Numbered from the stretch's first letter, positions 10,431 to 60,360 are shown. The stretch: DNA of 64,000 bases from Marsupella aquatica (GCA_973895155.1 CCZZQB010000054.1:1-64000), one strand, 5' to 3'. Numbers and translations are program-made. The notes: generated from the letters alone by a model not told the origin.

Positions 10431-10432
10431 AT

Positions 10433-14540: not shown

Positions 14541-14545
14541 CTTAG

Positions 14546-17318: not shown

Positions 17319-17323
17319 CTTCC

Positions 17324-24449: not shown

Positions 24450-24498
24450 TGTGATGCCTAGACAGGAATCACTCGGCCGGTTAAGTGGGTAAAGCAGG

Positions 24499-25889: not shown

Positions 25890-25960
25890 GCAGGAAGGCA
25901 CCCTAGGAACACCTTAGTATAGTGACAAAACAAGGAAAATATAAACAATTAGGGGCAACC

Positions 25961-29585: not shown

Positions 29586-30510
29586 CGGTGCAAGGGCGCC
29601 GTTCCTTTTAGGGAGGGCGGACGTGGAGGGAGGAGGCGTGAGTGGGCAGGGCGGGCACGGATCTCCACGTTTAGGATTAGGATCAGAACCAGGAGCGGCC
29701 CTGACACTTAGCTTAGTGGGATTGCGGTCCCACTGGTAGGAGCAACACTTGTGCTCCTGCCTTGCTGTACATAGGTAGATTCGGGCAAGTAGATTATTGT
29801 TAAGTAGATTAGGCTTACGATGCAAAGAATGGCGGATCCACTACCAGGATAAGTACCTGGGCAGCGGGGAGCTCAGGGCCTCTTCTTTAGCAAGTTTTTA
29901 GTTTGCACCAGCCGGGCTGGGATCAAGTAGTACGAGAAGCTCTCGGTTAGTCATACAGTGACCCTTGTGTATATTCATGTTTCCTCATGCCTAAGAGCTG
30001 AATAGAGTTGGCCTCACGGCTTAGTTCGCAGAACTTGTGTATGAGATGTACTGTTTGTATGGCAAGTGCATGGTATGACTCAGTCAGAATGAGTCAATTT
30101 GCTATTTGTGTGTCGCATTAACTTGTGTGAAGAGTGCCCACATCAACAGAAGGAAGGAAAGTAAGCAGGGGAGTGAGAGTTGGATGTGTCGAGCTGAGAG
30201 AGGTCTTAGCGGCTTAACCAAGCCTATTGGGGATCATTCCGGCGGCGGAATCCAAACATACCTAACAAGACGGAGGGGAAGACAGGGGAAGACAAGGGAA
30301 GGCCTATATTAGGCCGGCTACGTATCTCATGACCCGATGAAGGATCTGTCCAGTATATGTGTGTAAAATGTTAATAGTAGTAGTAGAAGGTTAGCAGCGT
30401 CCCATGCCGCTAAGCCGCGGAAACGGCCTCGCCAAGCACGAAACCTGCGGGAATCGGCTTGAGCTGGGGGGTTTCTTGGGGTTAGGGAGCCATGGGACGC
30501 ACCACATTTT

Positions 30511-30528
30511 TGGCGCTAGATGGAGGGG
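30511..30528 (+). promoter_or_regulatory. A1 PBS (tRNA-Asn-like, TGGCGCTAGATGGAGGGG)
   Basis: 4 nt after the LTR end; 1 mismatch to the complement of the plant tRNA-Asn 3' end as I recall it (TGGCGCTAGAAGGAGGGG). Confidence 0.75.
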
Positions 30529-30575
30529 GCATTTCTTAAGCCGTGAGATATGAAGTTAGAACGGAAGCGTAGGTA

Positions 30576-39700: not shown

Positions 39701-41391
39701 ACGCCAAGATGAACCAGATGGAGTCTGTCATCATTGCAGAACTCGACAAGGAGCTAAGAGCAACCCAGGAGGAGAGGGCTACCTTGAAGAAGGAATTGGA
39801 GGAAGCCCACAGGGAGCAGGAGGAGGCCAAAAACGAGCTGGAGGGGGCACGTAAGGACCTGGATGAAACCCAAGAGGAGTTGGAGGAAATCACGAGGAAG
39901 ATGGAAAACCTACAGCGGCGGGCCGACAACCAAACAGAGCGGCTGAAGAAACAAGCCGCAGTATTTAAAGGCTTAGCTGCAGCAGGTCCATCTCCTGTTG
40001 GGACAAACCAGTTACCAGGGGTGGTAATTGCCGAAGGACAAGCCGCGCCACCTGCACCAATGCCGGAGGTAAGTGGGAAGGGGAAGGGACCAGCTGCCGA
40101 GCCACCAACGAAGAAGAAGCGGAAACCTTCAGGGTCAAGGAGTAATACGACTTCACAGGCCGTGGTGATCAAGGAGGTAGACCCAGCACCGACCCCAGAC
40201 AGGGTCACGGCTAAGGATCCAACTACCCTAGGGGAAGGGGAGGCCGAAGCCGTGGGAGTGGCTGAAGCCGAAGCCGTGGGAGTGGCTGAAGCCGAAGCCG
40301 TGGGTATTACCGAGGCCGGTGTCGAGGCCGAAGCCGAAGGTGGACCCAGTCAGGCCGATGGAGAGTTGACTCGGTCAAGGGCAGGTAATCTGTCAGTAGG
40401 CGGGCCAACGGCAGTGGCTAAGGAGGAAGTATTGGGGGCGTCCATTGAGGATCCACCACCGGTGTCGTGACGGTGCAAGGGCGCCGTTCCTTTTAGGGAG
40501 GGCGAACGTGGAGGGAGGAGGCGTGAGTGGGCAGGGCGGGCACGGATCTCCACGTTTAGGATTAGGATCAGAACCAGGAGCGGCCCTGACACTTAGCTTA
40601 GTGGGATTGCGGTCCCACTGGTAGGAGCAACACTTGTGCTCCTGCCTTGCTGTACATAGGTAGATTCGGGCAAGTAGATTACTGTCAGGTAGATTAGGCT
40701 TACGATGCAAAGAATGGCGGATCCACTACCAGGATAAGTACCTGGGCAGCGGGGAGCTCATGGCCTCTTCTTTAGCAAGTTTTTAGTTTGCACCAGCCGG
40801 GCTGGGATCAAGTAGTACGAGAAGCTCTCGGTTAGTCATACAGTGACCCTTGTGTATATTCATGTTTCCTCATGCCTAAGAGCTGAATAGAGTTGGCCTC
40901 ACGGCTTAGTTCGCAGAACTTGTGTATGAGATGTACTGTTTGTATGGCAAGTGCATGGTATGACTCAATCAGAATGAGTCAATTTGCTATTTGTGTGTCG
41001 CATTAACTTGTGTGAAGAGTGCCCACATCAACAGAAGGAAGGAAAGTAAGCAGGGGAGTGAGAGTTGGATGTGTCGAGCTGAGAGAGGTCTTAGCGGCTT
41101 AACCAAGCCTATTGGGGATCATTCCGGCGGCGGAATCCAAACATACCTAACAAGACGGAGGGGAAGACAGGGGAAGACAAGGGAAGGCCTATATTAGGCC
41201 GGCTACGTATCTCATGACCCGATGAAGGATCTGTCCAGTATATGTGTGTAAAATGTTAATAGTAGTAGTAGAAGGTTAGCAGCGTCCCATGCCGCTAAGC
41301 CGCGGAAACGGCCTCGCCAAGCACGAAACCTGCGGGAATTGGCTTGAGCTGGGGGGTTTCTTGGGGTTAGGGAGCCATGGGACGCACCACA
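36731..41391 (+). repeat. A1 3' LTR (4,661 bp)
   Basis: Direct repeat of the 5' LTR with only scattered substitutions. Confidence 0.95.
36846..40470 (+). pseudogene. LTR-encoded ORF of A1 3' LTR (same two frameshifts)
   Basis: ORFs 36807-37076, 37103-39205 and 39118-40470. Confidence 0.8.
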
Positions 41392-41396
41392 GTGAC

Positions 41397-42939
41397 CAAG
41401 GAGGTAAACCCGGCACCAACCACAGGCAGGGTCACGGTAGAGGATCCAACTACCCTAGAAGGTGGGGATGGCAAAGCCAAGGCCAAGACACTCAGTGATG
41501 AAGCCGGGGTAACGGATCCACCACTAGAGCATGTCGGGGAGGCCGTAGCCGTATTAGAGGCCGTGGTCGATGCTGAGGGCGAAGCCGAGGGTGGACCCGG
41601 TCAGGCCGCGGGTGAGTTGACTGGGTCTGGGGCAGGTAATCTGTTAGAGGATGGACCTACGGTAGTGGTTGCGGAGGAAGCATTGGGGGCGTCCATTGAG
41701 GATTAGCCACCGCTACCATGACGGTGGTGGAGGGCCACTCCTTTTAAGGAGGGCGGACGTGGAGGGAGGAGGCGTGAGTGGGCAGGGCGGGCTCAGATCT
41801 CCAAGTTTAGAATTAGGATAAGGACCAAGAGGCGGCCCTGACACTTAGATTAGTGGGATTGCGGATCCACTGGTAAGAAGAACACTTGTGCTCCTGCCTC
41901 GCTGTACATAGGTAAATTATAATTAGGATAGATTAGGCTTACACTACAAGGAATTAGGCAGATCCACTACCAAGATAAGTACCTGGGCAGCGAGGAGTTG
42001 AGGCCTTCTTCTTTAGCAAGTTTTTAGTGCACCAGCAGGGCTGTGAAACTTGTGTATATTCATGTTTCCTCATGCCTAAGAGATGAATAGAGTTGGCCTC
42101 AAGGCTTAGTTTGCAAATCTTCATTGAATGGTAGCAATTTTATAAATTTTGTTCCCCCACAAAAAGCCCCACGGGAAGGGCGCACAAACAGGCAGCAAGG
42201 CCAAGAAGGCAACATCCAGTAGGGTAGCAGCCCAATCACACCGACACAACAAAGGGCCAGGCTTCCGCCTCAACCCAACACCCCCGCGCCCGGACAGAGC
42301 ACAACAGGGAGGGCACCCCTAAATACACAAAGAAACACATCACACGGCCAGTCCAAATTTGGAGAGCACGGCCAAGAAAGCAACAAAAGGCAGCCAACAA
42401 GCGGCCCATCACCCAAAAGAGATCAATCTCCCACCACCGCCAACCCAACCCCTACGAAGACTGTCAATCCAGTTTGCAGATCTTGTGTATGAGAAGTACT
42501 GTTTGTATGGCAAGTGCATGGTATAACTCAGTCAGAAGGAGTCATTTTGCTATTTGTGTGTCGCATTAACTTGTTTGAAGATTGCCCGCATTAACCAAGA
42601 AGGGAGTAAGCAAGGTAGTAAGAGTTGGATGTGTCGAGCTGAGAGAGGTCTTAGTGGCTTACCCAAGCCAATTGGGGATCATTCTGGCGGCAAAATCCAA
42701 ACATACCTAAAGGAAGACCAAGAGAGGAGGCCAAGGGAAGACATAGAAGAGGCCGACTACGTATCTCATGACCCGATGAAGGATCTGTCCAATATATGTG
42801 TATAAGTTGTTTGTAGAATGAGGTTAGCAGCGTCCTATGCCGCTAAGCCGCAGAACCGGCCTCACCGAGAGCAAAACCTACGGGAATCGACTTGTGCAGG
42901 GGGGTTTCTTGGGTTTAGGGAGCCATGGGACGCACCACA
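41397..42939 (+). mobile_element. Oldest family A LTR (A''), right segment to LTR end
   Basis: Continues the decayed ORF and ends GGGACGCACCACA at 42939, directly against transposase coding sequence. Confidence 0.85.
42122..42470 (-). mobile_element. 349-bp insertion with 14-bp TSD, probable truncated non-LTR retroelement
   Basis: Flanked by AGTTTGCAAATCTT (42108-42121) and AGTTTGCAGATCTT (42471-42484); absent from other A LTRs; G/T-rich on the minus strand. Confidence 0.55.
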
Positions 42940-43509
42940 GGAGGAAACTCAAATACAACATTTCCATTGTACTTGTTTGGCAAACAAGGAACTTGCTCGT
43001 GTTGGAAGTCCCCTGCCGCGATAAATCTTGACAGTTCACTATGTCCCGTGGCCTTGAGTAAGGCATCCATTGCACTCCGCCGGTAACCTTATGGACACCT
43101 CCGGAGGTGGCCACCGGTTCACTCTTAAGGCAACTAGAGTCTGGAACTTTGTACTTCACAGGAGGATTGGGCGCAACATCATCATCTTCACTCTAAGATA
43201 TTTCAACAACCTGGGTCAAAATGTTCTCAACAACCGATTGAAGAGGAGTAAGTTGGACATGAAGCGAGTAACAAAGTTCGACATTCATGTGCCAGAAACG
43301 TATTCCTCATCCACATCAAATGTCGCAGCACGTTCAAGTCCTGCACTCATTGACTCCTCATGAACAATCGACGCAATGTCATTGATTCTCAAATCGAATC
43401 TCCCACACAGGTAGGTTTCGCTTACTTGCTTGTAAGTATCATAAACTTGCATGGGAACCTTGACGACGTCCCCAGTACAAGCACGTGTAATAACAATTGA
43501 GCGCAACAT
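42940..43509 (-). pseudogene. Transposase N-terminal fragment, copy 1 (cut by A'' insertion)
   Basis: SIVITRACTGDVV..YLCGRFDLRINDI and HEQVPCLPNKYNGNVVFEFPP match 53411-53990. Confidence 0.8.
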
Positions 43510-44473
43510 TGTAGATGAATGAAGTTAAAGCCACTGGAAATTCATGCACTAAGCCAATCCCGGCCGTATGGGTTGCTTATACCACCCCTTCAAAGAGCAC
43601 CGGCCGTTAAAAGAGTTGTTTCAATACGACAGAGAACACGCACAACTTTGCGTCCGTTGAAATCATAAATGAAACATTTGTCCTTTTTGCCCGACAAGTG
43701 CGGGTGTCAGGAATATTTATAACATGAATACGACTAGATAATATCCTATACAAGTGCGTCCATTTCATTAGCGTTGGGCGCTACCTAAAAAGCATCTGAA
43801 TAACAATGACTTAATTTGAAAAGTCTTGTGACTAGTGCCTGGCGCTAGCATAATCATACACGCAATATTCATGAATTGTTTTTGCAAAATATTCCATTAC
43901 AAGCATTTTTAAGTTCAAATACAGTAAATTGGTACTAGCGCTGCACTCGGCGCTAGTATTGATACAATATACTTAATACCTTAATATCAAGTAAAGTTTA
44001 GTTACTATGGTTGAGAAGAGTACATTTGGAAGTTTGTTAACAATATCTGGTACTAAAATGCAACATTAATCAAATGATTCACATGGCTAGCGCTGGGCGC
44101 TAGCATTTGTTCACCAATAAGTTTTTGAATTTAGTGGTCACTTCTTTGTTAGCGCCTGGCGCTGGCATTGCATGTCTGTCTGAAAGGTGTGGAGACAACG
44201 GTAACATTTAACGGTCACTATTGTTTAGCGTGATGATCACGCCAACATTTTAGCGTAATTCACATTAATACTTCTCACGATTTCTAAATTGTCGCCTTCT
44301 GTCACGGATAAGTAATATTGAATCTCGTCGTTCACAATGAGTAACGTCTGATTACAAAGAGGGGAATAGAGCTCATTGATCGGATATAATACGGATGCAA
44401 TTGTTAATATGGTACGAAGAATTGGTAATCGGTCGTGAGAATTCTGTTCATAGACCTTTCATCATAAAGACGA

Positions 44474-45690
44474 TGGATGCAGTCCCCTCCTCGTCGAGGG
44501 GGTATAGTGTGGTTGGGGATTGGGATCGTGGGTATTGCGAGTCTTCTGAGTCTTCATTCTCTGGTTCAATGTATACACGTCGAGTAACAAGGTCCACCGC
44601 ATCGCTTATTCCAATCTTTGGTATTTCATTTGCCAAGCCAGTGAGAATGAAAATGGAGAATCTTGATACATTTGCAATTCAAGATGTTTCATTTTCGGAG
44701 ATCGATCTTATTTCAAAACACGTCATGTCTTTTGGGAAAGATTTCAGAGGTTTTGACAAAGAGCCTTCACAAATTCCGCTATGTCGATTGGTGCATATGG
44801 AGGTTGTCCGAACTCTGCAGAAAGATAGCTCTTCCATCGACAAGCTGAAAGACTCTTTCCGTAGCATGGGATACAATTCTTCAATTGGAATGAGGTTTAT
44901 GTTCAGCCCACTGATGCTGAGGGAGTGCTTCTCACCTGTACTCAAGAAATTTGTGATAGTTGGGATCCAATATGGACATCTGAGAATGAGAAATTTGAGG
45001 AAGAATATGCTGCCGACCCAGATTTTCTGGTTTTGAAGGATAGAATGTTCTCCATTTTTTACGGGAACCATAGGCTTTACTCATGGACACTTGTCACATA
45101 GGAGAATCCCCAAAACCCAAAGTACCACCCGCGAGTGCTTTGTACAGTTTTCAATGGGGACAAGGGTTCACTGATAGAAATCAAAGTTGCTATGCACATC
45201 GTAACCAGTAAGAGTTCTCTTTTGTGCATAACTTTGTGAGTCATTGTGAATTGTTAATTCTTTCTAGCATAACTTTCTGAGGCCATGTTTTACAAGCGCC
45301 TGACGCTGCTTATATGTTCTCATTTTGTTCTTTTATTTCAGGCTTGGACAAGCCGTTGTGGAACCCTCCTGGATCCTAGACGTCGATTGAATTAAGTGGA
45401 TCTTGATGCACGACCTGGAGTATTATAGTAAGCTCATCGACCCAACGAATTACAAGAAGTTTGAGCAGATCAGGATGAAGATGCAGAAGGAATCCTGGTA
45501 CACAAAGAAGATGCCTCAGGAGGCTCTTGTGTACATTCTATGTCAAGATAAGATTAAGTCGAATTCAAACCAGTTCAAGATTGACATGGAGTCCGTTGCG
45601 GCCCTCGGTACCCCTTGGTCGGTCGAGGAGGTTTCCAAAAGGCATGCTGTTATGATGAAGGAAGCAACGAGGTGTTTACAAAAGGCAGGA
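44474..45690 (+). pseudogene. ParB/Srx-like gene copy 1, N-terminal exons
   Basis: IPLCRLVHMEVVRTLQ..IDKLKDSF..FYGNHRLYSW (45060-45086); GT-AG intron ~45209-45340; SWYTKKMPQEALVYILC. Confidence 0.75.
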
Positions 45691-46868
45691 AAACAGGAAA
45701 CAGGCATTCATAACAGAAACTGGTAACAAGGAAAAAGACTGGTAACAGGAAAATTCTAGTCTCAAACTTTTGAAAAAAATTTCTGGTAGCACCCGGCGCT
45801 GGTAAAAATAGCGCCGACGGCGAGGTTTTTTTAAAAGACACCAAAAAAACAAACAGGAGTAAATATAAGAAACTCGTACCGGTAGGAACTCTCCACGGTT
45901 ATTGCTAGCGCCGAGCGCTGTGAAGAGTCTATAATTTGTACCAATTGCACTCTCGGAGGATATTTAATGAAGGGGGTTATGAAATGTTTGATCTCGGAAT
46001 GCTATTTAAGTCAATTATAATTAACCAAAACCTTTCAGTAGCGCCTGGCGCTACTACAGTAATCCCAGTTGACAACCATCGTCTATTCTAGCCTCCTCCC
46101 GATCAGGGTCTTTCCAGAAGACATCTAGCTGCAAAGATCCATGACTATTCCCGCCAGTTCACCTAATACCATAAAATCAGACGGAAAACAAAACATTCAT
46201 GCAACACAGCCCGGAAAGAATCGATCCACACCCAAGAACCCTTAGAAAATTGGGAAGCGCCCGACGCTAACCAATATTGCACCTGAGAACATGTCTTCAC
46301 AACTCAAACTTCAAGAATCTGAAATAAAATATAATAGTGACAGTATGTTTGAGGAGCGCCTGGCGCTAGTAAAAGTTGAAAGGGCTTAAAATCAGCCAAT
46401 TCATCGAAATGGTTACATATTGAAACATTAAATGATGTATTTGAAGAAAACCCCATTGCTACCTATAAACTACCAGATGTTTTTGATGCGGAGCTTTCAG
46501 ATTTGTCTGTGGACTCGGCTTTGTCATCAATGTACTTGCTTCGGGAAACATCATCTATATAAGGGTTGCTCATGAACTTCCTGTCTGCTCCCCTCTGAAG
46601 ACGTAGATCTTTTGTTTCCCAACAAAAAGTTCTAATTTTGTCAACCCTCCTAGCGGCATTTTCAGCGTATGAGGGAAAAACAAACGGCTTCTCAGGATTG
46701 ACAATTATATTCCTAGCTAGTCTCCTCCGGAGTTGGAAATGCTTCCTCAGATTCCATTCTGACCTGATCCAGTAAAACGGAAAAACATATGAGTTTAGGA
46801 GATAAGAGAGCAAGAACCCAGAATTGTCAACAACACTTGAAAGGATAAAGAAGCTTACTGGAAGAACA

Positions 46869-49800
46869 TTACTCGTCTGATTCTTCGCTCTTCTCCGAAG
46901 AATCTTCCTCCTGTGTTTTCTCTGTGTCATCTCCGACGTCTCCAGAGGTACCTTCCTCTTCGTCATAATCAAAATTGAGAACAGATCGGAGCCTATCTTT
47001 CTTTTTGCAACCACTTAAATTGGTCGGAACATGCCTGGGATCAAGAAGTTCTAAGAAAACCCTTGATGCGGTCTCAACAAACTCACGCCTATTTTCCAAC
47101 CCAATCACAAAATGACCAGAAAAATCACCAGCAATGAATGTGCTTCCTGAACCTACAGTCCAGTCAAGGACAATATCTCCAGGAAGAGTAAAAAGCTCTA
47201 TCACTGACTGCATAAAACCAACCGAAAGACAGGCGTTCCCAACAAAATCCAACTCCGGGCAATGATCTGTCTTCAAGGTTTGGAGCCCAATCAAGTTAGA
47301 GATCGAAGGATCTTCACTTATTGATAGAGGCTTAAACCTTCGATCCTTTGGTACCTTTCCTTTTGAAGAAGTTCGACAAAATATGTCTAGCCTAAGGGTA
47401 AATACCTGCACGCATCACACACGTTTGGCTCAAATTATCAACCGATGGGTAATGTTCGAGAACTACAGCAAAGACTAAATTAGCACCGGGCGCTGTCATG
47501 AGGTTTCCATCCTAAAGGAGGAATCCTCATATTTTGTGAAGGAAGTTGAAACCTATTTTACTTCTAACTTGGGCAAGTTGACTTGACTTGAGCTAACTTG
47601 ACCAAGGTGAAGGAGGAAGTAGAGTTATGAGGGTCAAGGTAGGGATGAGGTCAAGCCTACCCACCCTTGTTACTATTGTGGGGTATGTTTTTCATTTGTG
47701 ACCAGCGATTAAGTTATCATTTGGCGGATTGGCGGAATGGAGGTTGCTTGCTCAACAAGCAAGGTATTTAGGGTTTTGGCAACATGGTGACCAGGTTCAT
47801 TGAATACATGGAGGAGGTGACCAGGTTCAAGGCATGTAAGAGGGTTTGGTCCAAGTGCATCAGTTTTGTGAGATTTGGACCAGATTCAGATTTTTGTGTT
47901 AAATGGACCAGATTCAATGTATCTACTTCAACGGTGGATCTTGGTTTTGGTTAATGGATGGTTTGGATTGAAGGTGGAGATGTGAGTTAGGGCTTGGTGG
48001 AGGTCGTGGCTTTTTCAAAAATGTCGAAGCTCATTTGGTTTACAAGTTACTAAGGAGGGGTTTTTTGGCTCATTTTTGGCCGTTTGATCTAATTGGTGTG
48101 AGATTGAGGGCTGTGATTCAACGAGGATTAAAACCATAAGTGGAGGGGCTTGTGGGTGCTCTGGGCCTTCCCACGTGGGTACTAAAGGAGGAAGTTCGAG
48201 TGGCCAAGAGTTCGGAGGTTAGATGCTGCTGAAGTGCTGCCGTTTTGCCATTTTGGAGTGTTAAGTCCCATTTTTAGTTGTAGGAGCGAACCTCTTGAGG
48301 GGAGCTCGAGCATGAGGCATGAGTGAAGGGGGAGCCCTCCTCCTTGGCCATGGCCTTAGGATTTTGAGGGTAGGAGATGTAGAGGCAATTTTGTGAAGAG
48401 ATAGATGGAGTAGAAGCTTTGAATGTGAAGAGATTGAGTTTTGTGACGGTTTTTCTAGGGATTTGGAGAGAGGTTTCGAATGTAGGAGAGGCTGACTCGA
48501 AGCCTTAGGAAGGAGGTAGGATGTGAGTAGGAAGTATAAGGGGCTTGCATGAGAGATTGCCCACAAGAAGGCATACTCGAAGTAGGTTTGTTGCTTCAAG
48601 TTTTGAGGAGAATGGACTTGTAGGAGATTTTCGAAAGCTTAGAGGAGATGAGACCTAATCTTGTTGAAGCTTGGGAGTCTTGCATTAGAGATGGCTCACT
48701 AAGAAGGCCTACTCTCTTGTAAACTCCTTGACTTGAAGCTTCGAAAGTAGATTTGGTTGATAGAAGGAAGTATGAGAGAAGGAGACTAGGGTTTTGAAGC
48801 TTGGATAGGCTATGGAGGGATTTTGAATGCTTGGTTGATGATTAGACTTGGTGATGATTCATTTTTTCTAGGAGGGTCTTGCTTGTGACCCATGTTTTTA
48901 CTTGGAGACCATGATGCTACATGTGCCTTCTTGCTATGCATTTAGAGGAGAGGTATCCTCGTTTTTGAGATGTGTGTTGATGCCTTGCTTTGGCTATGAG
49001 TGATGGAATGGTTAGAATGAATGTCTTCATGCCATTTTCGAATGTTGTTGTGAGCTTGAAGGTGTTTTTGAAAGTAGATGGGTTGGATGAAGGTACTTTC
49101 AAAAGTAGTTATTATGCATGAGGGAAGTTGCAAGAGTAAAGAGTGAAGGCATTTTTGATTGATGGAATGGGTTGTTTGTGGATTGTACTTGGTGGTTCTA
49201 CTAGAGGAAGGGACTAAGGTCAATTCCATGTTTGTTAAGGAGTTTGTTGACCAACCCTAGGTCATTTTTCGAAAGTAGTTTTCCATGTTTCAACAGTTGG
49301 ATGTTTGAATGGTGCATAGAGATCCCTTGCATACCTTTGGATGTCCCACTTGTCTTAGCCACAACCAAGAGTGACCCGTAACTTGACCACATTGATGTAA
49401 GCTTGAACTTGTGTACCTTAGAGGGTTGCAAGGGATTGTGTGCAATCAAGTGTTGGAAAAGGAATGGTGACCAATTGAATGTTGGGCTTAGACTTGTGAG
49501 GATTACATTGGGAAGCTTGAACTAGTTATTTTGATTGTGATTGGATATGAGTATGTAAATGGCTTGAGTTTCGAAAGCATGCTTGCTTGCTTGTGATGAT
49601 GTGGATGAAAGGTTAGGGTAGATACTTTGTCTTGTTTGCAACCGTTTCCTATCTCTCAAGCAGCCATACACCCTGCGTGTCCCTTGAGGCCCTTTCCCAC
49701 CTCTTTGCTTATCCTCAGGACAGCGCTAACAATAAACAAGAGATGCAACGATCTATACCTGAATATTGGTGTTTGCTCTGTACATGGGCATAGACATGAT

Positions 49801-52785
49801 GACATTGTGAGAATTGACACAATGGAACTTTTTTGACTGCTGGCATGCTGAAATGACCTGCGAGACCTGGTCATGGTCATCTAAATACAAGATTGCAAGC
49901 ATGCCATCATCAGAAAGGAAAGGGTCCATCGCTTTGAAGAAAGAACTGGGAACTGTGTGGTCTGGTACATTCCACTTTGGAACCCGACGGTCCATGAGCG
50001 TAGGTTTAAGTCCAGTAGGAAGATAGATGAATCCTGCATTGACACCAAACGATCTTTCTTTTCCTCCTCTGATTACTCCCTTTACTCGGGAACCCGACTT
50101 GATTAAGTCCCGTCCCCATTTCTCTGCATCAGTCATCCAATCTGGTTTCGCTGCTTTGTTGAAAGCAGTATCAATAAATTCTTGGATACTTGTTTCCACC
50201 ATGCAATGCCTAGAAGATTTGCTCTTGAAGGTTCCCACATCTCTCTGAACACCAGTTCCAGCGGCATCATCTGGGGAAAATTCTCCAGCTTGAATTGCCC
50301 TTTTCTTCTTCTTCTTTGTATTGGTTGCATCAAGAGGGACGATCTCTTTCGCTTTGTCAATTGGAGTTACTGGGTCTGACTGGGCACCGGTATTGGCTTC
50401 GGAAGGCTCCAGAGTGGCATCTACTTTTGTTTCATTGGTTGCAGCATCAGACTTTCTCCCACCTAAAGGAAAAAGAGTAGAATTTATTCAATGCTAAATA
50501 ATAGCACCAGTCGCTGTCCAAACCAATTGAAAAAACAAACCAATAGACATAGTCATATAGCAGCGCTTGGCGCTAACCAAAATGTGAAGCTACAAGCTGA
50601 ATGACAACTTAAGTTTTTTGGCGGACCGCGTTGAGGTACTCGGTGCCGCAGCTTTGGTTTTTGCTTTGGCTCTGGGTTTACGACTTCGATCAACATGAAC
50701 AACCGTAGTTTTGCACACCGATTGCAATTCTGCCGCCGACTTGCTCACATCACCTTTGATTCCTGCTTCATGTCGGACACAAACTTGGGAGGGACCTGAG
50801 ACTTTGAAAGCTTATGAAATGCGTCTTTCTCAATGTCTCTAAATGGAGAGTCCCATCTATCGGTGTCCAAATACCAAGGACAATGAATTCTCTCCCATTC
50901 TGACAGTTTCCTTGGTGGAAGACACCCTTCAGCGGGATACATTGAATACACATCGGCCAGTATGTCTCCTTCGGGAACAACGATCCACTTTTGGAAAGCA
51001 GCAGGGTATGCCCAAAAGTAATTTGGCTTCACAATCTCCATATGCATGAAGAAATGGTACAGGTATCATTTGGCCCTCTTCTGATTCTTGAGGGTGTAGT
51101 CAGCCTTGTCGGGATACTTGGAAGGCCACATTGTATTAAAAAACTTGCCTTTCACAGCGTCCCCAAATTTCTTGAAGTCATTTGAGACTATTTCAATAAG
51201 CGATTCAATCGACTCACACTCCCACTCCTGCAACCGATTGGCGTGGACTATATCATTGACCTGGCGTAGGGAGGTTTGTAGCAAACCAATAGCGATTCCC
51301 TCCACAGTGTTCCAAGTTTTCTAGGTATGGCACCGTTGCTTCACTGGATCGTCATTAACGCTCTGTGGATGGAAGAATTGTTTCCTCAGCTCCGGTGTAC
51401 AATGGGCAACCAGAAGGGTACTCCTCAGCTTGGGGTCGAGGGCAAAGACAGCGGTAACCAATCTTGCTCGATCCATTGTACAGACAATTGCATCCGGATT
51501 CTTCTCTCTCTTATTCTTCTCTGTGAGGGGGTACATCTCAGCACATGTCCGCATGAAATCCTCAAAAGTGGGGCTTAACAGAGGAGTGATTTTTGACACC
51601 TTTATCGCCCAATCCTTTGTTGCCTCCATCATCGCTGCATGTCTTTTTGAAATCTCTGCGGGAGACCAAGGTGTACCCTGAGCGGCAGCATGTTCCAGAT
51701 CCATCTTAAACTGTCTAGAATTAGACTTGATCTTATTCTCACACAAGATGTACAGAAGCGCTTCTTGAGGCATTTTTTTCGTATACCACGATCCCTTCCG
51801 TGTTTTCTGCATGATCTACCCAAACTTCTTGAAGTTTGCAGCGTCAATGATAGACTTGTAGTAATTCAGTTCATTCGAGAGAATTTGGTTGATACGGTCT
51901 GCATCAAGTATCCAAGAGAGTTCGACCACTACCTGCCCAAGCCTGAAAACGAGAGAGGGAGTCAGTAGCGCCCGACGCTAGTGAAACACTATGATCATAG
52001 ATTAGAATAGAAATATATTGGAAGAGACACTTATTGGTTAACAGTGTGCATTGCCGCCTCAATCTCGATCAAGGACCCCTTTTCTCCCTTGAATATTGTG
52101 CACTGGACACGAGGATGGTATTTCATATCATCTGGATTCTCCTTTGTGACGATGGACCATGCGTAGAGTTGATGGTTTCCATCAAACACAAAAAACATCT
52201 TATCCTACAGGACGCAGAAGTCAGGGTTGGCAGCGCATTCCGCCTCAAACTTTTCGTTCTCTGCGACCCAAATTGCATCCAGGAAGCACGAATCTCTGGC
52301 GTGCAGATCTGGACTTCTCCATTGGAATCTGTTGGTTGGACGTAAAACAGCATGCCGATCTTAGGATTGTATCTTGTGCTCTGAAAGGAGTCTTTCAGCT
52401 TCTCTATCGAAGGGCTTCCCTTCTGTAATGTCCGTACTACTTCCATATGAAGTAGTCGGCACATTGGAATCCTTGGCGGATCCTTGTCATGTCCTCGGAA
52501 ATCTTTTCCAAATGACATAATGTGTTTGGAGATCACATCGTAAACAGTCAGCAACGTCTCTCCAAAGACCTCCATAGCAAACGAATTAGAATCATCCATC
52601 TTCCCTCTCTTGCTATTCGGGAACAATACAGCGGGTTGTGCTTCAGGGGCTCGCGAAGCAGTGGATCAAGTCACTCGACGACTATACACAGATCCTGAAA
52701 ATGAGCACTCAGATGTTTGCGAGGGGACGACCTCTCTGTGTCGGTTTCCACTAAAGCATTGAGAGGAGGATAAGGCAGGGTCCAT
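46869..52785 (-). pseudogene. Spliced gene: ParB/Sulfiredoxin-like domain fused to a beta-class N6A/N4C DNA methyltransferase-like domain
   Basis: FDGNHQLYAW (52157-52183); GFIYLPTG..KWN..FFKAMDPFLSDDGMLAIL (~49890-50035); IELFTLPGDIVLDWTVGSGSTFIAG..VIGLE (~47095-47200); phase-0 intron 49758-47406 joins NTNIQ/VFTLRL in frame; several stops and frameshifts. Confidence 0.75.
47494..49722. mobile_element. Solo LTR of family G (2,229 bp) inside the last intron of the methyltransferase gene
   Basis: Termini TGTCATGAGG and CCTCAGGACA (9/10 inverted match); 4-bp TSD GCGC; removal restores a 120-nt intron and an intact palindrome. Confidence 0.85.
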
Positions 52786-53410
52786 TGCTCGCACAAGGGC
52801 GAAGGAAGCACTGACGACCACCGCGCTCTTTCCGTACTGCAAACGGAAAAAACCCGTCACACAGCTTCGATCGTACTGTACTTAACATGGGAAATAAGAA
52901 GAATCTAGAGCACAGAGCATGACATATACGCTAAGGAAACTGAACTCCTAGCCTGGATCTATGACACATGTCGTTATCTTATTTGACAACACATAAGGGG
53001 ATCAATGTATTGAGGGTCATGCAACCTATAGTTACCGTTGAATATGACCGTTGAAAGGAAAACCTGACGTTAGATGGACCCCAACCTTTTGGATTGTTAT
53101 GAATAGCGCCAGGCGCTAAACATAAATTGACTTTGCATGGACCTCTACTTTTGCAATGTTTTTAATAGCGCTTGGCGCTATTCATCATCTGATATTTCTA
53201 GAACAAAAGGGTTCTTCCTAAATAACGTTTTTTGTTAATGTCGTTGATTGTAAATGACGTTGATATAATGACAAAATACATATATGGTGTTAGAGGATTG
53301 TCTTATTATAATGGCTTTAGGGAACTGTTAGTCAGGATCGATAACAGTCCTCGTCGGTGGAATTTTGATTCATAATTTTCCTACACTCATTCGCTTCCAA
53401 GGCTTCTGTG

Positions 53411-56400
53411 ATGTCTCAGTCAATCGTAGTTACCCGTATGTCCACCGGTGACATTGTTTCCATTCCAGTGTCTGTGGCCGAAAGGTACAGGCAAATAAGT
53501 GAGGTTTATCTTTGTGGAAGGTTTGATTTGCGCATGAATGACATAAAGGCAATCGTTCAGGAGGGAACGGAAGCCAATGACTTTGAATCTATCGCACTTT
53601 TTGATGTCGATGACGGGGTGAGATTTTGGCACCTTAATGTTGGGTTGCGCTACTCCATTGTTGTTCGGGAACCAAATCAAGGAGATTGGCAATCCCCTCA
53701 GAGGGATCCGGTGGATGTAGTTGCTCTTTCCGATAGTGATGATGAGGAGCCACCAAGGATCCCCTTCGTGGAGCCTTCGGCGCCTGAAGTGGTCTTGGTC
53801 AAAGAGGAGATGCCATCGTCGCAATCCCATATTGTATACCGGAGAAGTGCAATGGACGCGCTGCTCAAGTCAACTGGGTCCAACAAACTTTCAAGGTTCA
53901 TTTCGGCTGGAAACTTCCGGCATGAACAAGTACCTTGTTTGCCACCGAAGTACAATGGAAATGTAGTGTTTGAGTTGCCTCCATTGTCGGGAATTCTTTC
54001 AAAAGGATCCCGTCTACAGGACATGGACCAAACCAAGGATTGCTACATCTGGACTAGAATATTTCCTACCACTACAAACGTGCAGCCCAAGAAATACTGG
54101 GAATTCGGTAAAGTCACTTGTACTGGATTTATTGAGTGCAGGAATAAAACTTGTGACTACTTCCGCCGAAGAAGAGGAGGAATGCAAAGGCATGGGCTGG
54201 TACCCCAAAACTTGGAGGCTCTCACCGTGTTGGATCGTTCATTGAGCAGGGTGGAGTTGTTTGTCATTATTGCCAGCAGCTCCCTTTTTGTGTAGAGGCA
54301 TGCTCTGCAAGACTGTTTTATATGTATCCTCAAGTTCTGCTTGACTCAAATACCTGTAGTCACATGTCTTGCCTTGCGATTCATACGGGCACCCACAACC
54401 ATCCTTGTCGTAAGGTATTTTCCCGGAGTGCGGAAAAGGTAGTTGAAGATGTCATAAAAAAGAAATTGGAAGGCAATCCAACTTGGACGCCTGCCAGGAT
54501 TAAAAATGTAGCGACAGGATCTTTTGTACAGTCTTTGTGTGAGAGCCTAGGTGAGATTGAAGATATCGAAGAGACAGAGATTTTCCAGTCTCTAATGGTA
54601 GTTTCTACTCCACAGAAGTTTGCATCTCTTTTCAGGAGTGTTAGGCAGGACCAGAAAGGCCGTGGAGAGTTGGATTTTCTTGTTCGGTATCAAAAGAATA
54701 TCAACATGCCTTTTCTACACAGGTACATCCTTCCAGGTCAAGGATCTCAAGAAGACAAACCTCACATATTTAAGATGACTTCCAAAGGCCATGGGTCTGG
54801 GGTGGATCTTTTGCGGCAAATGCAACCTGGAGGGATGCTTGAAGGTGCCTGGGTAAGCTTCGATGTCATGAAATGAATGACCAAGGATTGGGTGACTTTT
54901 AGCGCACACGTTTACGATCACAATTACCGCGCATTGTGTACAATATTTACTTGCGAGCTAAAAGCTGAGGACACGGCGTCATTCGAGAAGGCTTGGAGAT
55001 TAATGATTGAGGTTTCCAAAGAGAATGGGTTAGATAATCCAACCATTCATGGCTTCATGGCAGACAATGCCCAAGCCGGATGGTTAGCAGTCCGAAATGT
55101 TTTTTTTGGAGGGCACCCAAACCCTGAACGAGAGAGGACGGACGCTTTTCATTTTTACCAAGCTTTTCATCGCCATTCTGTTGAAGGAGTGTTGGAAGAG
55201 AAGCAGGCGAAACATCAAATGCTATGGGATAAATTACGGAATGCACCGACATTTGTAGAGGCTTACCGACTTTCAAGAGAGATTGACCTATGGTGGTAGT
55301 CGGGTAATTGCTTACTTGGAAAGAAGTGTTTACAAAAGATAGCAAACAGGAAACAGGATTTAATAACAAAAACTGGTAACAAGAAAAAAAACTAGTAACA
55401 GGAAAATGGATGGAAATTTTTTTTGAATTTTTTTTTGAATTTTTTTTTTGAAAATTTTTTTTTTGAGAAAAAAAAAGTTTTTTTTTTGGTCAACCAGTTT
55501 TTTTTGCTACAGCCCAAAGCTAGCCAAAAATGTTGCATTGTTAATTTTTTTTGGAAATAACATGTTTTATGAGACATTTTTAAATTGTCATTTTTCCTGG
55601 TAACAGTGATTTTTTCTTGGTAACAGCATTTTAAAAACAGGAAAAAAAAATCTTGTTTACCTGTTTCTTGTCTTCGTCGCTATACCCCCTGGAAAGCTCC
55701 GAATGCTTCAAAGTTGGATATCGTGGTGGGTCGTGCGTTGGAGGCAGTGGGGAAATTTTATTCGCTTGGTGAGTAATAGCGCTTGGCGCTAGTAATATGC
55801 AAGTCAGATTGCTTTGTAGAAGTACATTTTTCAGATGACATTCCTCAACATTCCATCCAAAGAATCCAAATAATGTAATTGATTCTCAAATATTGACCTA
55901 TTTATTTTCATAAACATGTGATTACACAATAATATTGATGGTTTTGTCTAAATGTTCTGCCTAGCGCCTGGCGCTAGTATGTTTTGCGGATTCTTACCAG
56001 TGTTTATGCTTTGTCGTTCTAGGACAAAAGTGCTGAAGAAGGCGCTAGGATTCCTAACTATACCGGGTCAGAGTCTGTTCATGCGGGAATGAAAGCATGG
56101 GTAATGAAAAAAAAAGTTGGGCTCTTTGAGGCATGTGAAATGGATCAGAATCGAGCTATATCGCAGGTTGCAGCATATACCACATATCGGAAAGGATTGA
56201 GTAGAGGAAGAGGTCCTACAATATGGGAACTGGCTTTCCGTTCAGCTGACCAGGCAGGTTCCCCAGAGCTGTTCGAGGATGCGATGAACATGCTCCTCTC
56301 CAATGCAGCTGAGTTTGACTTGGAGAGAAGCGTTCCTCTCAACGGAGATGTTACAAAGTCTGTCAAGAGGAAAGGACCTGCAACTGGGATTGTCTCGCCA

Positions 56401-57546
56401 CAAGACTCCCACCGACATGATAAAGTCCTTATCACATCGCCGAATACCAGATCAATCAAGCGTAAAAATCTGCACCACACAATGTTTGCTTCCATATCGG
56501 AAGAAAAACCTGATGACATTTCCGTTGTCAATCTCTCAGGAAGTGATGATTCGAGGGATGTAGATCGTGATGATTTCAGTACACCGCAGAGTCGACATCA
56601 ATCACGTTCAACACAATACCCACAAAGCGCCCCCGCTGTACTTCAGCAGACATTGCTCCAATCTCCAGTTCTTGAAACAGAATTCATGCAGGGTTCATGG
56701 CATCTGTGTCAGACATCAAGATTTGGGGCCGGTCCACAGTGCAACACGTCATTTGGCGGTAGTTCCGAGAGAGACGAGGGTCGAAATAGAGTGAAGAAAG
56801 TTGGGTTCCCCTCATCAAACAATGTCATTGGAATTGTTGTCAAAGGACAATGCATGTTCAGGGGGGAACCCATAGCCAAAATGATATGGTTCTGCCCAAA
56901 CAACACATGCTATCGGGGCCGTCCCCGCCGTGGTGTAGTGAACCTGCCCTCCGTTCCTGATGTTCTTCCTGTTATAAAAGGAACAAATGTTTCGGAAGCT
57001 GAGATGAAGTATCTTGTTGACCAGGGAATACCTATAGCCCGAGGAAGAGACGGTCCTCTACCTCCACCATCACTTTTCGAGCTTTGAATCAATGTAAACT
57101 TATTTCCAGAGAGAGTGAATCTTTTGGAACCCACTGTTCGTCTCCAAAGTCGGAATGGAAAGAACACGGTTCCTCGATCGACCTTGACCCATGGTCACAT
57201 GAAGAGGATTGAATCTGCAAGAAAAGAGACCATGTCCGTCTAGGGACAATGGGATGTTTCTATTGGGAACTCATGGGGGAAGCAATTCAAAGTACAAACA
57301 CATGAGAATCTAAGGACGCCGAATAGTTACTTTGTGCAGATTTGTATTTTCCCGACTTGTTCTTGTGAGGATTTCTATCGTCGACATTCTCGCAGACATC
57401 CATATATGCCTTGCAAACATTTGTACTGGGTTTTCCATACCGTTTTCAAACTAGACGTTGAGGAATCTACTTTGACCAGCCAACCAATTCTCACAGTTGG
57501 AGAAGTCCGACTGATCTTGGAGAGGGAGAATGCTCATGGTTTATAG
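53411..57546 (+). pseudogene. MULE-type DDE transposase with GCM-like Zn domain and C-terminal SWIM finger
   Basis: CTGFIECRNKTC..CHYC..CVEACSAR..HTGTHNHP; WVSFD (D1), FMADNAQAG (D2), AFHFYQ (CxxH position), PNYTGSESVH (E); CSCEDF..PCKHLYW; GT-AG intron ~55769-56023; stops and frameshifts. Confidence 0.8.
55324..55687. mobile_element. AT-rich MITE-like insertion in the transposase
   Basis: Flanked by CTTGGAAAG and CCTGGAAAG (9 bp, 1 mismatch); removal restores ..NCLPGKLRMLQSW..; its 5' ~90 bp recurs at ~45672-45760. Confidence 0.6.
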
Positions 57547-57730
57547 AGAAGTATATATTTGTCCTATACTTGAAACGGTTATATTAGTTTTTGTCGTATT
57601 ACAACGATATAGTTTTATGTTAGCGCCTGGCGCTAGGATGGAAGTCTTCCTTATTATCATTTACTTCATTGTAATCCTATCACTACAAATGATATTTTAA
57701 ATTTGTGTTTCCTGTTAGAATATATTTAAC

Positions 57731-59206
57731 TGTGATGCCTAGACAGGAATCACTCGACCGGTTAAGTGGGTAAAGCAGGAAGGCACCCTAGGAACACCTT
57801 AGTACAGTGACAAAACAAGGAAAATATAAACAATTAGGGGCAACCATGGAACCCGGGCAGAGGCCGGAGGTAAGGCTGAGGGTGAAAACCCGATTAGGGT
57901 TAGGGCGCGTTAAGCGTCGGCGGCTAGGAAGGATCAACGGGAAGAAGGACCGGCAGAGGAGAGGGGTAAGGAGCGCTTGCAGGAGATGGTGGCTCATTTG
58001 CGAGCACGAACTAGGCAGACGACTACGGGAGGCCAACTACTGTCAGCTGCTTAAGCAAGCACTCGGGGAGAGAGTAGATACCGACGATCGACCTAAGGAG
58101 GGTATGAGCAACGTCAATCAAGCGGCACATTTTTGGGGATGCCTGTTCGAACGGGCAACTGAGTACATCAAGACTTACGAGGACGAGGAGTCAGAAAGGG
58201 CAGCTCGAGAACGGCAGGAGCTCGTTCGATTGTGGGAGCTGCACAAGACGGCTTTCTTAGGAGGCGAACTCATCAAGGACGAGTTCCTGTGGACGCCTAC
58301 TTCCAATCAACTCGACGATCTTCTGTTTTGCAAAGACAGCGTCGTCGGCATCCGAGAGGCCATCAAGAACTGCAACGACATACACTGGGAATTAAAGGGT
58401 AGCACGGAAAGGTGGACCCGGGCAACGGTGCTAGGAGAAACCTCCACGGCAGCAGAGATGAAGAGGAAGGGAGCCGTCAACGATGAAGCCACCCCGGCAA
58501 AAAGAACGAGGTCGGCGGCACCAAAGAAGCCAGCCGAGCAGCAGAGCAGGAGGCAGGGAGAAGCCGAAGAGGAGGAGGTCGATCCCATCAAGGCCATTCC
58601 AACCAGGGATGACACCTGGAAGGGCTGGGCGGCAACCCTACCGGTGGAGGTGCAACTACATTTTGCACGGGAGGAGGATGCATGCTTTACGGCCATGCAG
58701 ACCAAGAAGTACCAAGGCTTCATGGCCGGATCCGGCTTGGAGGCCTTTGTAAGATTACCATGGCTGAAGCCGGAGGTACCGGAGTCAGACCTATTAGAAT
58801 TCGTGGGGTCATGGGAACCCGAGACCAATTGCACGAGGATATATGGGAAGGATTTCTATCTTACTCCCAAGGTAATTGCCGAAGTGTTTGGCTTGCCGAT
58901 GGGCAATAAGACCAAAGTTGATACCAGGAAGACCTTGCCTGACAAGGAGTTCCGGTCGTTCCCCGGGCCATCAACGAAGAATGGCTTCTTCCGGAACACC
59001 TGCACCAACCCGCACATAGGAGAGATGATCGACTTCTTGCGGGTGACCATGCATTGTAACTTGCCGAGGGCAGAGATCGGCAAGGCATAGGTCTATCTGG
59101 CAGAAAGGCCAGACCCAAGCCGGGACTACAACGGGTACCTCCTCAACCAATTGAAGAAGATCTTAAAGGAGGAGCAGCAGGTAATCGGCATGGGGAGCGT
59201 GTCGCG
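57731..59206 (+). mobile_element. Family A LTR, 5' 1.5 kb, interrupted by element F
   Basis: Starts TGTGATGCC; homology stops at GTCGCG 59206. Confidence 0.9.
57807..59090 (+). pseudogene. A LTR ORF N-terminus (427 aa, continuous across the first A1 frameshift; premature TAG from CAG)
   Basis: ORF track; first ATG at 57846. Confidence 0.75.
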
Positions 59207-59567
59207 TGTGACGGGTACCCCGTCACGGGAAGTCACACATAACTGGTTGCAAAGGCCGATACCTTGTTAATAGTCAATGTAAATAAGCCATTTTTTAATT
59301 TTTAGTTAATTCCGTCATTATAGGTTGATGATGCCCCAGGTGACTTTATATTCTTTCTCTCATAATAGTTCTAAGATTTGCGGCGACCTAAGTGGGCAAA
59401 TATTTTGGGACCTTGAAACTAGCCAGGACCAGCCCCATAGGACTTACCGTTTTGCTTCAAGAGCTATTGTTGAGACCCCCATTGCAAAGTCAGGAGAGGG
59501 GGGGGTTTTTTTAAATAAATCCCTCCTCAGGAGGGCGAGTCCCATTAGTGGCCGTCCGAGAGAAAGA

Positions 59568-59940
59568 GGGGCTGCCTCGCGAGCCCATAGGGCTGCGTGC
59601 CCGGGCGATTAATGGGGCTCCGCGAGCTGAAGGGGCTGCCTCGCGAGCCCATAGGGCTGCGTGCCCGGGCAATTAATGAGGCTCCGCGAGCTGAAGGAGC
59701 GCAAGCGAGCGGGGGGGGGGAGTTAAAGGGCCTCCCGCGAGCTGGGAGGATCACGCGAGCGGGGGGGAGTTAAAGGGCCTCCCGCGAGCTGGGAGGATCA
59801 CGCGAGCGGGGGGGAGTTAAAGGGCCTCCCGCGAGCTGGGAGGATCACGCGAGCGGGGGGGAGTTAAAGGGCCTCCCGCGAGCTGGGAGGATCACGCGAG
59901 CGGGGGGGAGTTGAAGGGCCTCCCGCGAGCCGGGAGGAAT
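59568..59940 (+). repeat. GC-rich tandem arrays: 2 x 64 bp followed by 5 x 47 bp
   Basis: 47-bp unit GCGAGC-G7-AGTTAAAGGGCCTCCCGCGAGCTGGGAGGATCAC starting at 59705, 59755, 59802, 59849 and 59896. Confidence 0.9.
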
Positions 59941-60360
59941 GGCCGCGCGCCCTGCATAGGGCCGCGCGCAGGAGGACGCAAGGGTAAGGCCCGAGAAATG
60001 GGCCGGGGCGCATGGCGAAGGCGCCAGGAGTTTTTTCGGTTCTATTTTTTTTCCTTCCTTTTTCTTTCCCTCTTCCTTTTGCACGACCCTCTCATTGCCG
60101 AAAGCAAAAACGGGGTTCTTCTCTCTCTTGCCGGAAGCTCTCTCCAGATTCTAATTATTTTTGAAGCTCTCTCTTTCATGGTGGATTAGTGGGGCTTGCT
60201 GGCGTCATTCTTCCAGGCATTAGTGGCGGCCGCACGGAGTAGTGACGGGAAATTGAGAGAATTTAAGTGATCGGGCTACGGGGGCTGTTTCGGGCCAGGG
60301 AATTGACATTGCCACGGGTGACGGGATTGGTGATTGAGAAATTGATTTCGGGATGCATGG

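Follow-up and report, generated by a model that had tools for sequence, protein, structure and literature searches.

It is rare for a transposon to be equipped with epigenetic tools; described cases are VANC in Arabidopsis Mutator-like elements (MULEs), the C5-methyltransferases of certain retrotransposons, TET/JBP in fungal KDZ elements and the red-algal PAG genes. The locus described here lies at positions 42940–57730 of a 64,000-nucleotide stretch of Marsupella aquatica DNA (GCA_973895155.1, CCZZQB010000054.1:1–64000; the whole stretch is called the window below) and contains two decayed copies of a Mutator-type element, in each of which a transposase gene and an accessory gene stand head to head. 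Among the closest described systems is VANDAL21 (Hiun), an Arabidopsis MULE whose accessory protein VANC21 binds a family-specific motif and lifts silencing from the whole element; the VANC21 motifs accumulate in introns and in intergenic and terminal regions, often as tandem repeats (PMC5735166). Red-algal Plavaka, Mutator, Zisupton and Fanzor elements carry PAG2 (N6-adenine methylase plus SET) and PAG3 (ParB N-terminus plus 2-oxoglutarate [2OG] oxygenase), the ParB-domain gene adjoins inverted-repeat arrays, and its protein was proposed by the authors to bind and modify its own element (bioRxiv 10.1101/2025.02.11.637652). Fusions of ParB-helix-turn-helix (HTH) and adenine methylase modules were described in chlorophytes and chytrids, as were eukaryotic methylases that derive from phage ParB-terminase loci (PMC4738411). 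Bacterial-type methylases of the PF01555 class are further represented in eukaryotes by MpDN4MT1a/b of Marchantia and N4CMT of bdelloid rotifers (bioRxiv 10.1101/2021.02.12.428880; PMC8885841). MpDN4MT1 is described as lacking extra domains, and the S-adenosylmethionine (AdoMet)-binding segment of PF01555 enzymes does not reveal their specificity (PMC8885841).

With a probability of roughly 0.6, we read the locus as one near full-length and one truncated copy, both dead, of a two-gene autonomous Mutator-type transposon whose accessory protein would read palindromes spread through the element and would modify or protect it. Such an element resembles VANDAL21 in belonging to the Mutator superfamily, in having an accessory gene beside the transposase gene and in a non-coding, family-specific motif that differs between related families; here, too, a short motif of this kind is concentrated in the non-coding parts of an accessory-encoding MULE. 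The two differ in that the VANDAL21 motif is a directional 9-mer, whereas the present one is a palindrome known from sequence alone, and in that the host of VANDAL21 is a eudicot while that of the present element is probably a liverwort. Compared with VANC by description, the accessory protein here ends in a predicted amino-methyltransferase segment and has a DGNHR motif. With the PAG-bearing elements, likewise compared by description only, the locus shares transposon-borne accessory genes with amino-methylase and ParB-like modules as well as inverted-repeat arrays. It differs from them in that both modules would lie in one protein (if the ParB label holds), in that neither a SET nor a 2OG-Fe(II) domain was matched in any exon or relative, and in its other host lineage. 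The features of the interval are as follows, with positions counted from the first letter of the window.

42940–43524, minus strand: N-terminal transposase fragment of copy 2, about codons 5–206 of copy 1, found by tblastn with copy 1 pieces (52–80% amino-acid identity); an inverted repeat, cut at 42940, where it meets the 3′ end of a degenerate long terminal repeat (LTR)
43525–44473, no strand: head-to-head spacer of copy 2, with palindromes at 43834, 44089 and 44151
44474–45668, plus strand: accessory-gene fragment of copy 2, with a frameshift near 44900 and a stop at 45099–45101 in exon 1, a palindrome at 45295 in intron 1, and exon 2 ending after codon KEAT at 45668
45669–46868, no strand: non-coding stretch between the copies and 3′ flank of the copy 1 accessory gene, with palindromes at 45788, 45907, 46040, 46256 and 46355
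46869–47411, minus strand: last accessory exon of copy 1, with a predicted beta-class amino-methyltransferase (MTase) motif X/I (..LPGDIVLDWTVGSGST..), an acidic tail and a TAA stop at 46869–46871; assigned by Pfam, PDB, PHROG, PADLOC and the relative P0134
47412–49752, minus strand: intron of 2.3 kb with canonical GT..AG ends and a palindrome at 47482
49753–50238, minus strand: exon expected by position to hold the catalytic half of the MTase, recognised by none of the libraries, with YLPTG as candidate motif IV
50590–51937, minus strand: middle accessory exons without recognisable domain, with a palindrome at 50562 in the adjoining intron
52034–52881, minus strand: accessory exon 1 of copy 1, with a ParB-like motif (..KMFFVFDGNHQLYAW..), stops at 52666–52668 and 52205–52207 and a frameshift near 52279
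52882–53410, no strand: head-to-head spacer of copy 1, with palindromes at 53105 and 53167
53411–57546, plus strand: transposase pseudogene of copy 1, with a Cys/His-rich N-terminal region, a DDE core and a C-terminal SWIM-like finger (57334–57546)
55322–55689, no strand: insertion of 368 bp in a transposase exon, like a miniature inverted-repeat transposable element (MITE), with a 9-bp target-site duplication (TSD) CTTGGAAAG / CCTGGAAAG (8/9) and imperfect inverted ends of about 85 nt
57547–57730, no strand: flank 3′ of the transposase gene, up to the LTR start at 57731; palindrome at 57622

The 13-bp palindrome AGCGCCNGGCGCT, often in the form TAGCGCCNGGCGCTA, occurs 17 times at no more than one mismatch, against 0.02 occurrences expected in the window, and had not been mentioned in the original prediction. 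All 17 copies fall within 43834–57634, that is, inside the element only, and all are in non-coding sequence (spacers, introns and flanks); each of the eleven imperfect copies differs by a C>T or G>A transition. Of the 13 palindromes in the span of copy 1, none lies in a coding block supported by homologues, and such blocks account for 58% of the span (P 1.3e-5). The spacer carries a pair of palindromes 62 bp apart in both copies (44089/44151 and 53105/53167), to which copy 2 adds a third at 43834. The palindrome in intron 1 of the accessory gene is kept in four copies (both window copies and the Logan relatives L001 and L006), and the others are found in further introns and in both 3′ flanks.

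Palindromes, 13–15 bp long in the family, also accompany relatives of the transposase gene; they occupy the same compartments, and each lineage has its own sequence. Relative L004 contains TAACGGNNCCGTTA 21 times against 0.01 expected, in upstream tandem repeats of 64 and 96 bp as well as in an intron and downstream. A TAGCGTNNNACGCTA-like palindrome occurs six times in the spacer of locus L003 of Riccia sorocarpa, and GGAGAGNCTCTCC nine times in locus L002 of Calypogeia fissa. Of the eleven TCCCGGGNNNNCCCGGGA sites of relative L010, ten form a 45-bp upstream tandem array (7035–7481), and L011 carries GCCAGCGNNNCGCTGGC twice after the stop. The L010 array lies 2.7 kb upstream of a distant transposase relative, and a CACTA (Transposase_21) open reading frame (ORF) is located further upstream. 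Because the palindromes are kept while their flanks diverge, avoid coding sequence and change with the lineage, we regard them as putative binding sites, best read as the sites of a co-evolving, element-encoded dimeric protein.

A plus-strand gene (53411–57546) and a minus-strand gene (52785/52881–46869) diverge from a spacer of about 0.5–0.6 kb, as the original prediction had stated, and the second, inverted and diverged pair that it reported is also present (43524→42936 on the minus and 44474→45668 on the plus strand; 65–76% nucleotide identity). Copy 1 spans 46869–57546, while the truncated copy 2 spans 42940–45668 in the inverted orientation. Since their identity amounts to only 65–76% at the DNA and 46–80% at the protein level, the two copies are old relatives and not products of a recent duplication. 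Copy 2 retains about 200 transposase codons and the first 1.5 accessory exons and lacks the methylase part; its remainder was sought beyond the LTR elements and was not found within the window. The same divergence bears on the notion that there is no transposon at all and that an ordinary bidirectional host gene pair was locally duplicated in inverted orientation and then decayed. Such a pair would agree with the fact that termini and TSDs of the element itself were not demonstrated, but 65–76% identity is too low if a conserved host gene had simply been duplicated in place, the predicted DDE/RNase H core of the plus-strand protein is closest to IS256 transposases, the relatives are multiple fragmentary copies in several genomes and metagenomes, and the region itself is a nest of transposons. 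We consider a host gene pair barely credible.

The two genes had also been claimed to travel as one unit. This holds for the two pairs of the window and for Riccia sorocarpa, where the ParB-like front exons of the accessory gene (6779–5799, minus strand) stand head to head with the transposase gene (plus strand, from 9731). Accessory-gene linkage was readable in few relatives, the contigs of the remaining ones being too short to judge, and as far as the predicted genes go, linkage of transposase and accessory gene is supported in two species. In Calypogeia fissa, tblastn did not detect the accessory gene, and a CACTA element lies upstream of the transposase gene. The same locus has an ORF with FVAIDGNQRLRAW (17778–18164), a DGNQRL ParB-like motif, 5 kb downstream of the transposase on the same strand, which is suggestive only. 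Three related ORFs with weak F-box-like matches (13031–13576, 18891–19442 and 20189–20734) are also located downstream of the transposase, and two of these, together with the DGNQRL-motif ORF, are situated within the region of the GGAGAGNCTCTCC palindromes or immediately behind it. L005, a remote relative in an ENA assembly, showed neither palindromes nor an accessory gene and was uninformative.

An exhaustive HMMER search with the transposase core exon yielded 103 relatives among 1.8 billion cluster representatives, mostly ORF-sized fragments, and the only named ones came from the liverworts Calypogeia fissa and Riccia sorocarpa (46–48% identity). In copy 1 the DDE core reads ..VSFDVMK*..HVYD.., ..GFMADNAQAGW..RERTDAFHF.., and in the family it reads ..FD.., ..HVYD.., ..GFMAD.A.A.W..R.V..RER(S/T)(C/D)xFH.., later ..ES.H.., followed by a C-terminal CxCxxF...CKH SWIM finger; a Cys/His-rich N-terminal block is conserved as well. 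The DDE core, the D/CxxH after the second D, the ..ES..H.. third catalytic region and the C-terminal SWIM finger are common to IS256/Mutator transposases (ISCth4; plant MURA and FAR1/FHY3). The AlphaFold2 (AF2) model of a single-ORF relative, P0121, built on a 31-sequence alignment, reached a per-residue confidence (pLDDT) of 70–90 in the core. When this model was compared with PDB by Foldseek, the top three matches were to the IS256-family ISCth4 transposase (structures 6xg8 and 6xgx; probability 0.91–0.99, E 4.5e-3 to 9.3e-3), behind which Hermes, RAG1 and retroviral integrases ranked. The NCBIfam model transpos_IS256 was the best match of P0121 (E 1.2e-4) and matched another relative, P0118, weakly (E 0.15), while a profile of the transposase family found nothing among PDB sequences.

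IS256 is the prokaryotic branch of the Mutator superfamily. Since it was the best match in both structure and profile, the plus-strand gene was accepted, on modest scores, as a predicted Mutator-superfamily DDE transposase of a small, rare and divergent clade. The earlier assignment to a MULE-type DDE transposase is upheld in that the protein is of the DDE type with IS256/Mutator as nearest relatives, but not at the level of Pfam: MULE (PF10551), Transposase_mut, FAR1 and DBD_Tnp_Mut gave no match at E up to 1 in the window pieces or in 16 relatives, which sets this very small clade apart from described IS256/Mutator families. A GCM domain (PF03615), which the original prediction had also proposed to look for, was not matched in window pieces or relatives, nor were WRKY or FAR1; in the P0121 model the N-terminal region contains a four-stranded sheet at residues 232–275 (pLDDT about 70–79 for 211–250 and <50 for 251–285). 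The predicted SWIM finger was confirmed for the family, as P0121 scored 23.7 bits against the Pfam cut-off of 19.6; the corresponding window piece (57334–57546) remained below that cut-off with 15.6 bits and has the CxCxxF...CKH pattern in common with L004.

The transposase gene of copy 1 is broken by a frameshift (54155–54156), four in-frame stops (54874–54876, 55297–55299, 57085–57087 and 57241–57243) and the 368-bp insertion at 55322–55689. Several introns had been assumed in this gene. Only one of them (about 55772–56049) is real, judged against L004, which has it too, and contains the palindromes at 55778 and 55963; most of the assumed introns turned out to be the frameshift, in-frame stops or the MITE. 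In L004, a RING-finger ORF (5669–6190; zf-C3HC4_3, E 5e-11) lies downstream of the intact transposase amid the TAACGGNNCCGTTA palindromes and may be a different accessory gene of that lineage.

The introns of the minus-strand accessory gene proved real, including the 2.3-kb one with its GT..AG ends, but the gene itself is a pseudogene with stops in exons 1 and 2 and a frameshift near 52279. A foreign insertion at 47412–49752 was ruled out by these ends and by the lack of any repeat of this segment elsewhere in the window. Intron 1 of copy 1 corresponds to 51938–52033, with a palindrome at 51967, and exon 2 (51294–51937), which has two in-frame stops, is 66–70% identical to P0001 and to an ORF of L006. 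An intact relative of exon 1, P0135, has 281 aa and is 64% identical. Word-indexed protein searches returned two matches for exon 2 and one each for the MTase exon and exon 1, all of them short Logan/SRA fragments. Pfam recognised no domain in the non-MTase accessory exons, and among the raw ORF pieces of both genes and their copies it matched only the C-terminus of N6_N4_Mtase and, below threshold, SWIM, with no ParBc, MULE or GCM.

The last exon (46869–47411) matched PF01555 with 33.3 bits (cut-off 26.7, E 6e-8) over profile positions 163–219 of 221. It reads ..ELFTLPGDIVLDWTVGSGSTFIAG..GLENRREF and includes the AdoMet-binding motif I (FxGxG) and motif X, located C-terminally as in the beta class. 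In PDB it matched the DpnA-like adenine methylase M1.HpyAVI (5hek, E 1.7e-5) and also CcrM and M.MboIIA; type II methylase models of PHROG and PADLOC gave about 1e-8, NCBIfam agreed, and tblastn found about 30 phage methylases. The best matches of the segment were N6-adenine enzymes. By these matches the minus-strand gene was shown to end in a predicted AdoMet-binding segment of a prokaryote-type, beta-class N6/N4 amino-methyltransferase. What the accessory gene shares with the prokaryotic and phage enzymes of this class (PF01555; E 1e-5 to 1e-8) is the motif X/I segment, whereas many introns, about 600 extra N-terminal residues, an acidic tail and an unrecognisable motif IV half distinguish it from them. 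The exon at 49753–50238 had no pairwise similarity to three phage MTases, and by eye it has YLPTG where those read DIPY or DLPY; these three references are stand-alone enzymes without ParB. With a catalytic half that no library recognises and a candidate motif IV other than DPPY, the predicted accessory protein is doubtful as an active methylase. The N6/N4 methylase of the original prediction is upheld for about 55 C-terminal, AdoMet-binding residues, but not for the catalytic half.

Among 5.8 billion proteins the MTase exon had one match, P0134, a eukaryote-type fragment, and no close bacterial relative. MpDN4MT1 and N4CMT, compared by description only, are active host genes, whereas the accessory gene is transposon-borne, multi-domain and decayed. 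A link between the predicted accessory gene and MpDN4MT1 is not supported, because MpDN4MT1 lacks such additional domains and adenine enzymes are what the segment matches best.

The minus-strand gene could alternatively be passive cargo that plays no part in the biology of the element: a gene fragment of host or bacterial origin, picked up in the manner of a Pack-MULE, its methylase part being a dead relic. The small number of recognisable MTase residues (about 55, without the catalytic half), the great rarity of the accessory family and the lack of a detected MTase part in Riccia would agree with this. However, copies with only 46–70% protein identity, and a second liverwort species, preserve the linkage and the orientation; P0135 keeps exon 1 open over 281 codons; the position of intron 1 and its palindrome are conserved in four copies; and the gene is divided into several exons of its own, bounded by canonical splice sites. 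Capture of a passive fragment therefore appears quite improbable to us.

Regarding the N-terminal part of the accessory protein, a conserved stretch of P0135, IPLCRLVHMEVVRTLQK...KDKMFSVFDGNHRLYSW, resembles the ParB/Srx pattern. The motif FSVFDGNHRLYSW (DGNHR) is conserved in P0135, in copy 2 of the window and in L001 and L003, and copy 1 reads DGNHQ. A DGxHR/GxxR box that follows a beta-strand and is preceded by an I-P-x-x-R-L..R.. segment is present, as a pattern recognised by eye and without a statistic. The DGNHR motif also had a sub-threshold match (E 0.13) to the NCBIfam model TIGR03187 (DGQHR), which we take to be a DndB-type member of the ParB superfamily. Since it is the DGNHR motif and this one match that speak for it, "ParB-like" is used here as a reasonable guess for the accessory N-terminus and not as a result.

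Under the two-gene transposon reading, the palindromes would be recognition sites of an element-encoded dimeric DNA-binding protein, and the likeliest binder would be the accessory protein acting through its N-terminal ParB-like region. By means of the palindromes it could recognise its own element along the whole length and then alter the epigenetic or transcriptional state of that element; amino-methylation would be one way and binding alone the other, should the catalytic half be truly degenerate. Both copies of the window would have been inactivated later by transition mutations, by the MITE insertion and by nearby insertions of LTR retrotransposons.

The chief competitor for the role of binder is the transposase, which might recognise the palindromes through its N-terminal zinc-finger region, for transposition or for the activation of cognate copies, with the accessory gene independent of them. 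The palindromes accompany the transposase in all six relatives with enough flanking DNA, while the accessory gene is documented in no more than three lineages, and the tandem arrays of L004 and L010 stand just upstream of the transposase gene like subterminal repeats. The AtMu1 transposase is reported in a 2026 preprint to activate cognate copies in a sequence-specific manner (10.64898/2026.08.24.746577). On the other hand, the short contigs of L004 and L011 leave room for an accessory gene, and palindromic sites suit dimeric binders of the HTH or ParB type. Moreover, the sites in the window are found deep within the element and in introns of both genes, whereas in known elements those bound by the transposase are grouped at the termini. 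Binding by the transposase is in our view a serious possibility, though a somewhat unlikely one.

Several results weigh against the two-gene transposon with a palindrome-reading accessory protein. Palindromes also surround transposase relatives that have no visible accessory gene (L004 and L011, which are too short, and L002, which has a motif-level candidate in another position), and therefore the transposase may be the binder. The ParB domain (PF02195) of the original prediction had no Pfam, PADLOC, PDB or phage match, whether window pieces, piecewise profiles or the intact relative P0135 were used. P0135 gave nothing significant in Pfam, PDB, PHROG, NCBIfam, PADLOC or phage genomes; profiles of the ParB-like exon in two halves found nothing among PDB sequences, and searches with P0135 and P0118 in metagenomes, together with viral scans, yielded nothing useful. 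The single-sequence AF2 model of P0135 was unusable (pLDDT 31.7), the homologues being too few for an alignment. As a whole, the profile searches left the minus-strand gene without a ParB assignment and with half of an MTase assignment. The catalytic motif IV, (D/S)PP(Y/F), was not recovered, since the exon at 49753–50238, available as a decayed copy only, matches no library, and in Riccia sorocarpa the methylase part could not be detected downstream in L003. Both scores, E 1e-4 for IS256 and 4.5e-3 for Foldseek, are modest and derive from a relative that is only 34% identical in the core, not from the broken window copy. Finally, every copy seen with more than one exon is broken, and no active element was seen.

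Decay was read against uninterrupted relatives: on the transposase side these were P0118 and ORF 2 of L004, and on the accessory side P0135, P0001 and ORF 2 of L006. In-frame stops are likewise carried by the Riccia copy and by the Logan contig L001. Many of the inactivating changes are transitions of the CGA-to-TGA type, which would fit silenced, methylated repeats. An Rfam scan gave no match.

A 9-bp TSD is a Mutator signature, and its presence on the MITE-like insertion counts in favour of the Mutator assignment. This TSD (CTTGGAAAG/CCTGGAAAG) repeats the codons (L/P)-G-K relative to L004. AACAGG and TGGTAACAG motifs abound in the insertion, whose left 89 bp (55320–55407) recur at 45666–45754, exactly where the homology of copy 2 ends. 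The recurring segment may be a family terminus, in which case copy 1 would sit inside copy 2, or the same MITE may have inserted twice. When nesting at 45669 was tested with the 89 bp as terminus, a corresponding 9-bp duplication did not turn up; the right end adjoins an LTR. A search for terminal inverted repeats (TIRs) at the presumed ends of copy 1 gave inverted matches of no more than 11 bp. Because LTR sequences abut both outer ends, the TIRs and TSDs of the element are unreadable at this locus.

The limits of the interval given in the original prediction, 42940 and 57730, are exact, the flanking bases being the 3′ end of one LTR (42939) and the 5′ start of another (57731). The left neighbour is a degenerate LTR (41392–42939) with 75–85% identity to the 4.6-kb LTRs of a young Gypsy element at 24448–41391, and the right neighbour is an LTR that starts with TGTGATGCC at 57731 (98.7% identity). 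The remainder of the 64-kb window consists of Copia and Gypsy elements. The LTRs of the young Gypsy retrotransposon (25889–30506 and 36774–41391, 4.6 kb) are 99.6% identical over these coordinates and hold long internal ORFs of 700 and 450 aa without Pfam match; the left one is interrupted about 50 bp from its start by a 1.39-kb insertion (24499–25888). The first 1.2–1.5 kb of the same LTR recur at 1–1155 (minus), 3485–4959 (minus) and 57731–59206 (plus) with 98–99% identity, each copy starting with TGTGATGCC. An ORF of 427 aa without Pfam match (57807–59090, plus strand) lies within the right-hand LTR copy and is of one family with the ORFs inside the LTRs at 26218 and 37103. Past 59206 this copy gives way to unrelated sequence, in which G-rich tandem repeats with 64-bp and 47-bp units (up to 100% identical) occupy 59544–59948. 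Copia-type polyprotein ORFs (gag, integrase and RVT_2) extend over 7353–16617 and 17300–21306, apparently as two partial tandem copies, and a Gypsy-type gag ORF is located at 19387–21306, with two further ORFs adjoining on the minus strand.

Liverworts are the plant group in which a bacterial-type 4mC methylase is essential for sperm function. Because the copies in the window are dead, the value of the finding lies in the family and not in this locus, and because each lineage has its own palindrome, the family would offer a simple, testable pair of protein and DNA recognition site. A far-reaching possibility, which we rate as a long shot, is that a liverwort Mutator lineage has its own DNA-marking module, a ParB-like/amino-methyltransferase fusion that nucleates on co-evolving palindromes throughout the non-coding parts and writes 6mA/4mC or shields the element, to escape silencing or to time transposition; such elements might then have been an entry route of bacterial-type amino-methyltransferases, including the ancestors of MpDN4MT1, into bryophytes. 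As far as the searched literature shows, this would be the first land-plant example of a transposon with such a methylase-related accessory gene. If true, a liverwort Mutator lineage with a methylase-related gene and a co-evolving palindromic "address label" would add a land-plant case to the few transposons that carry their own epigenetic tools.

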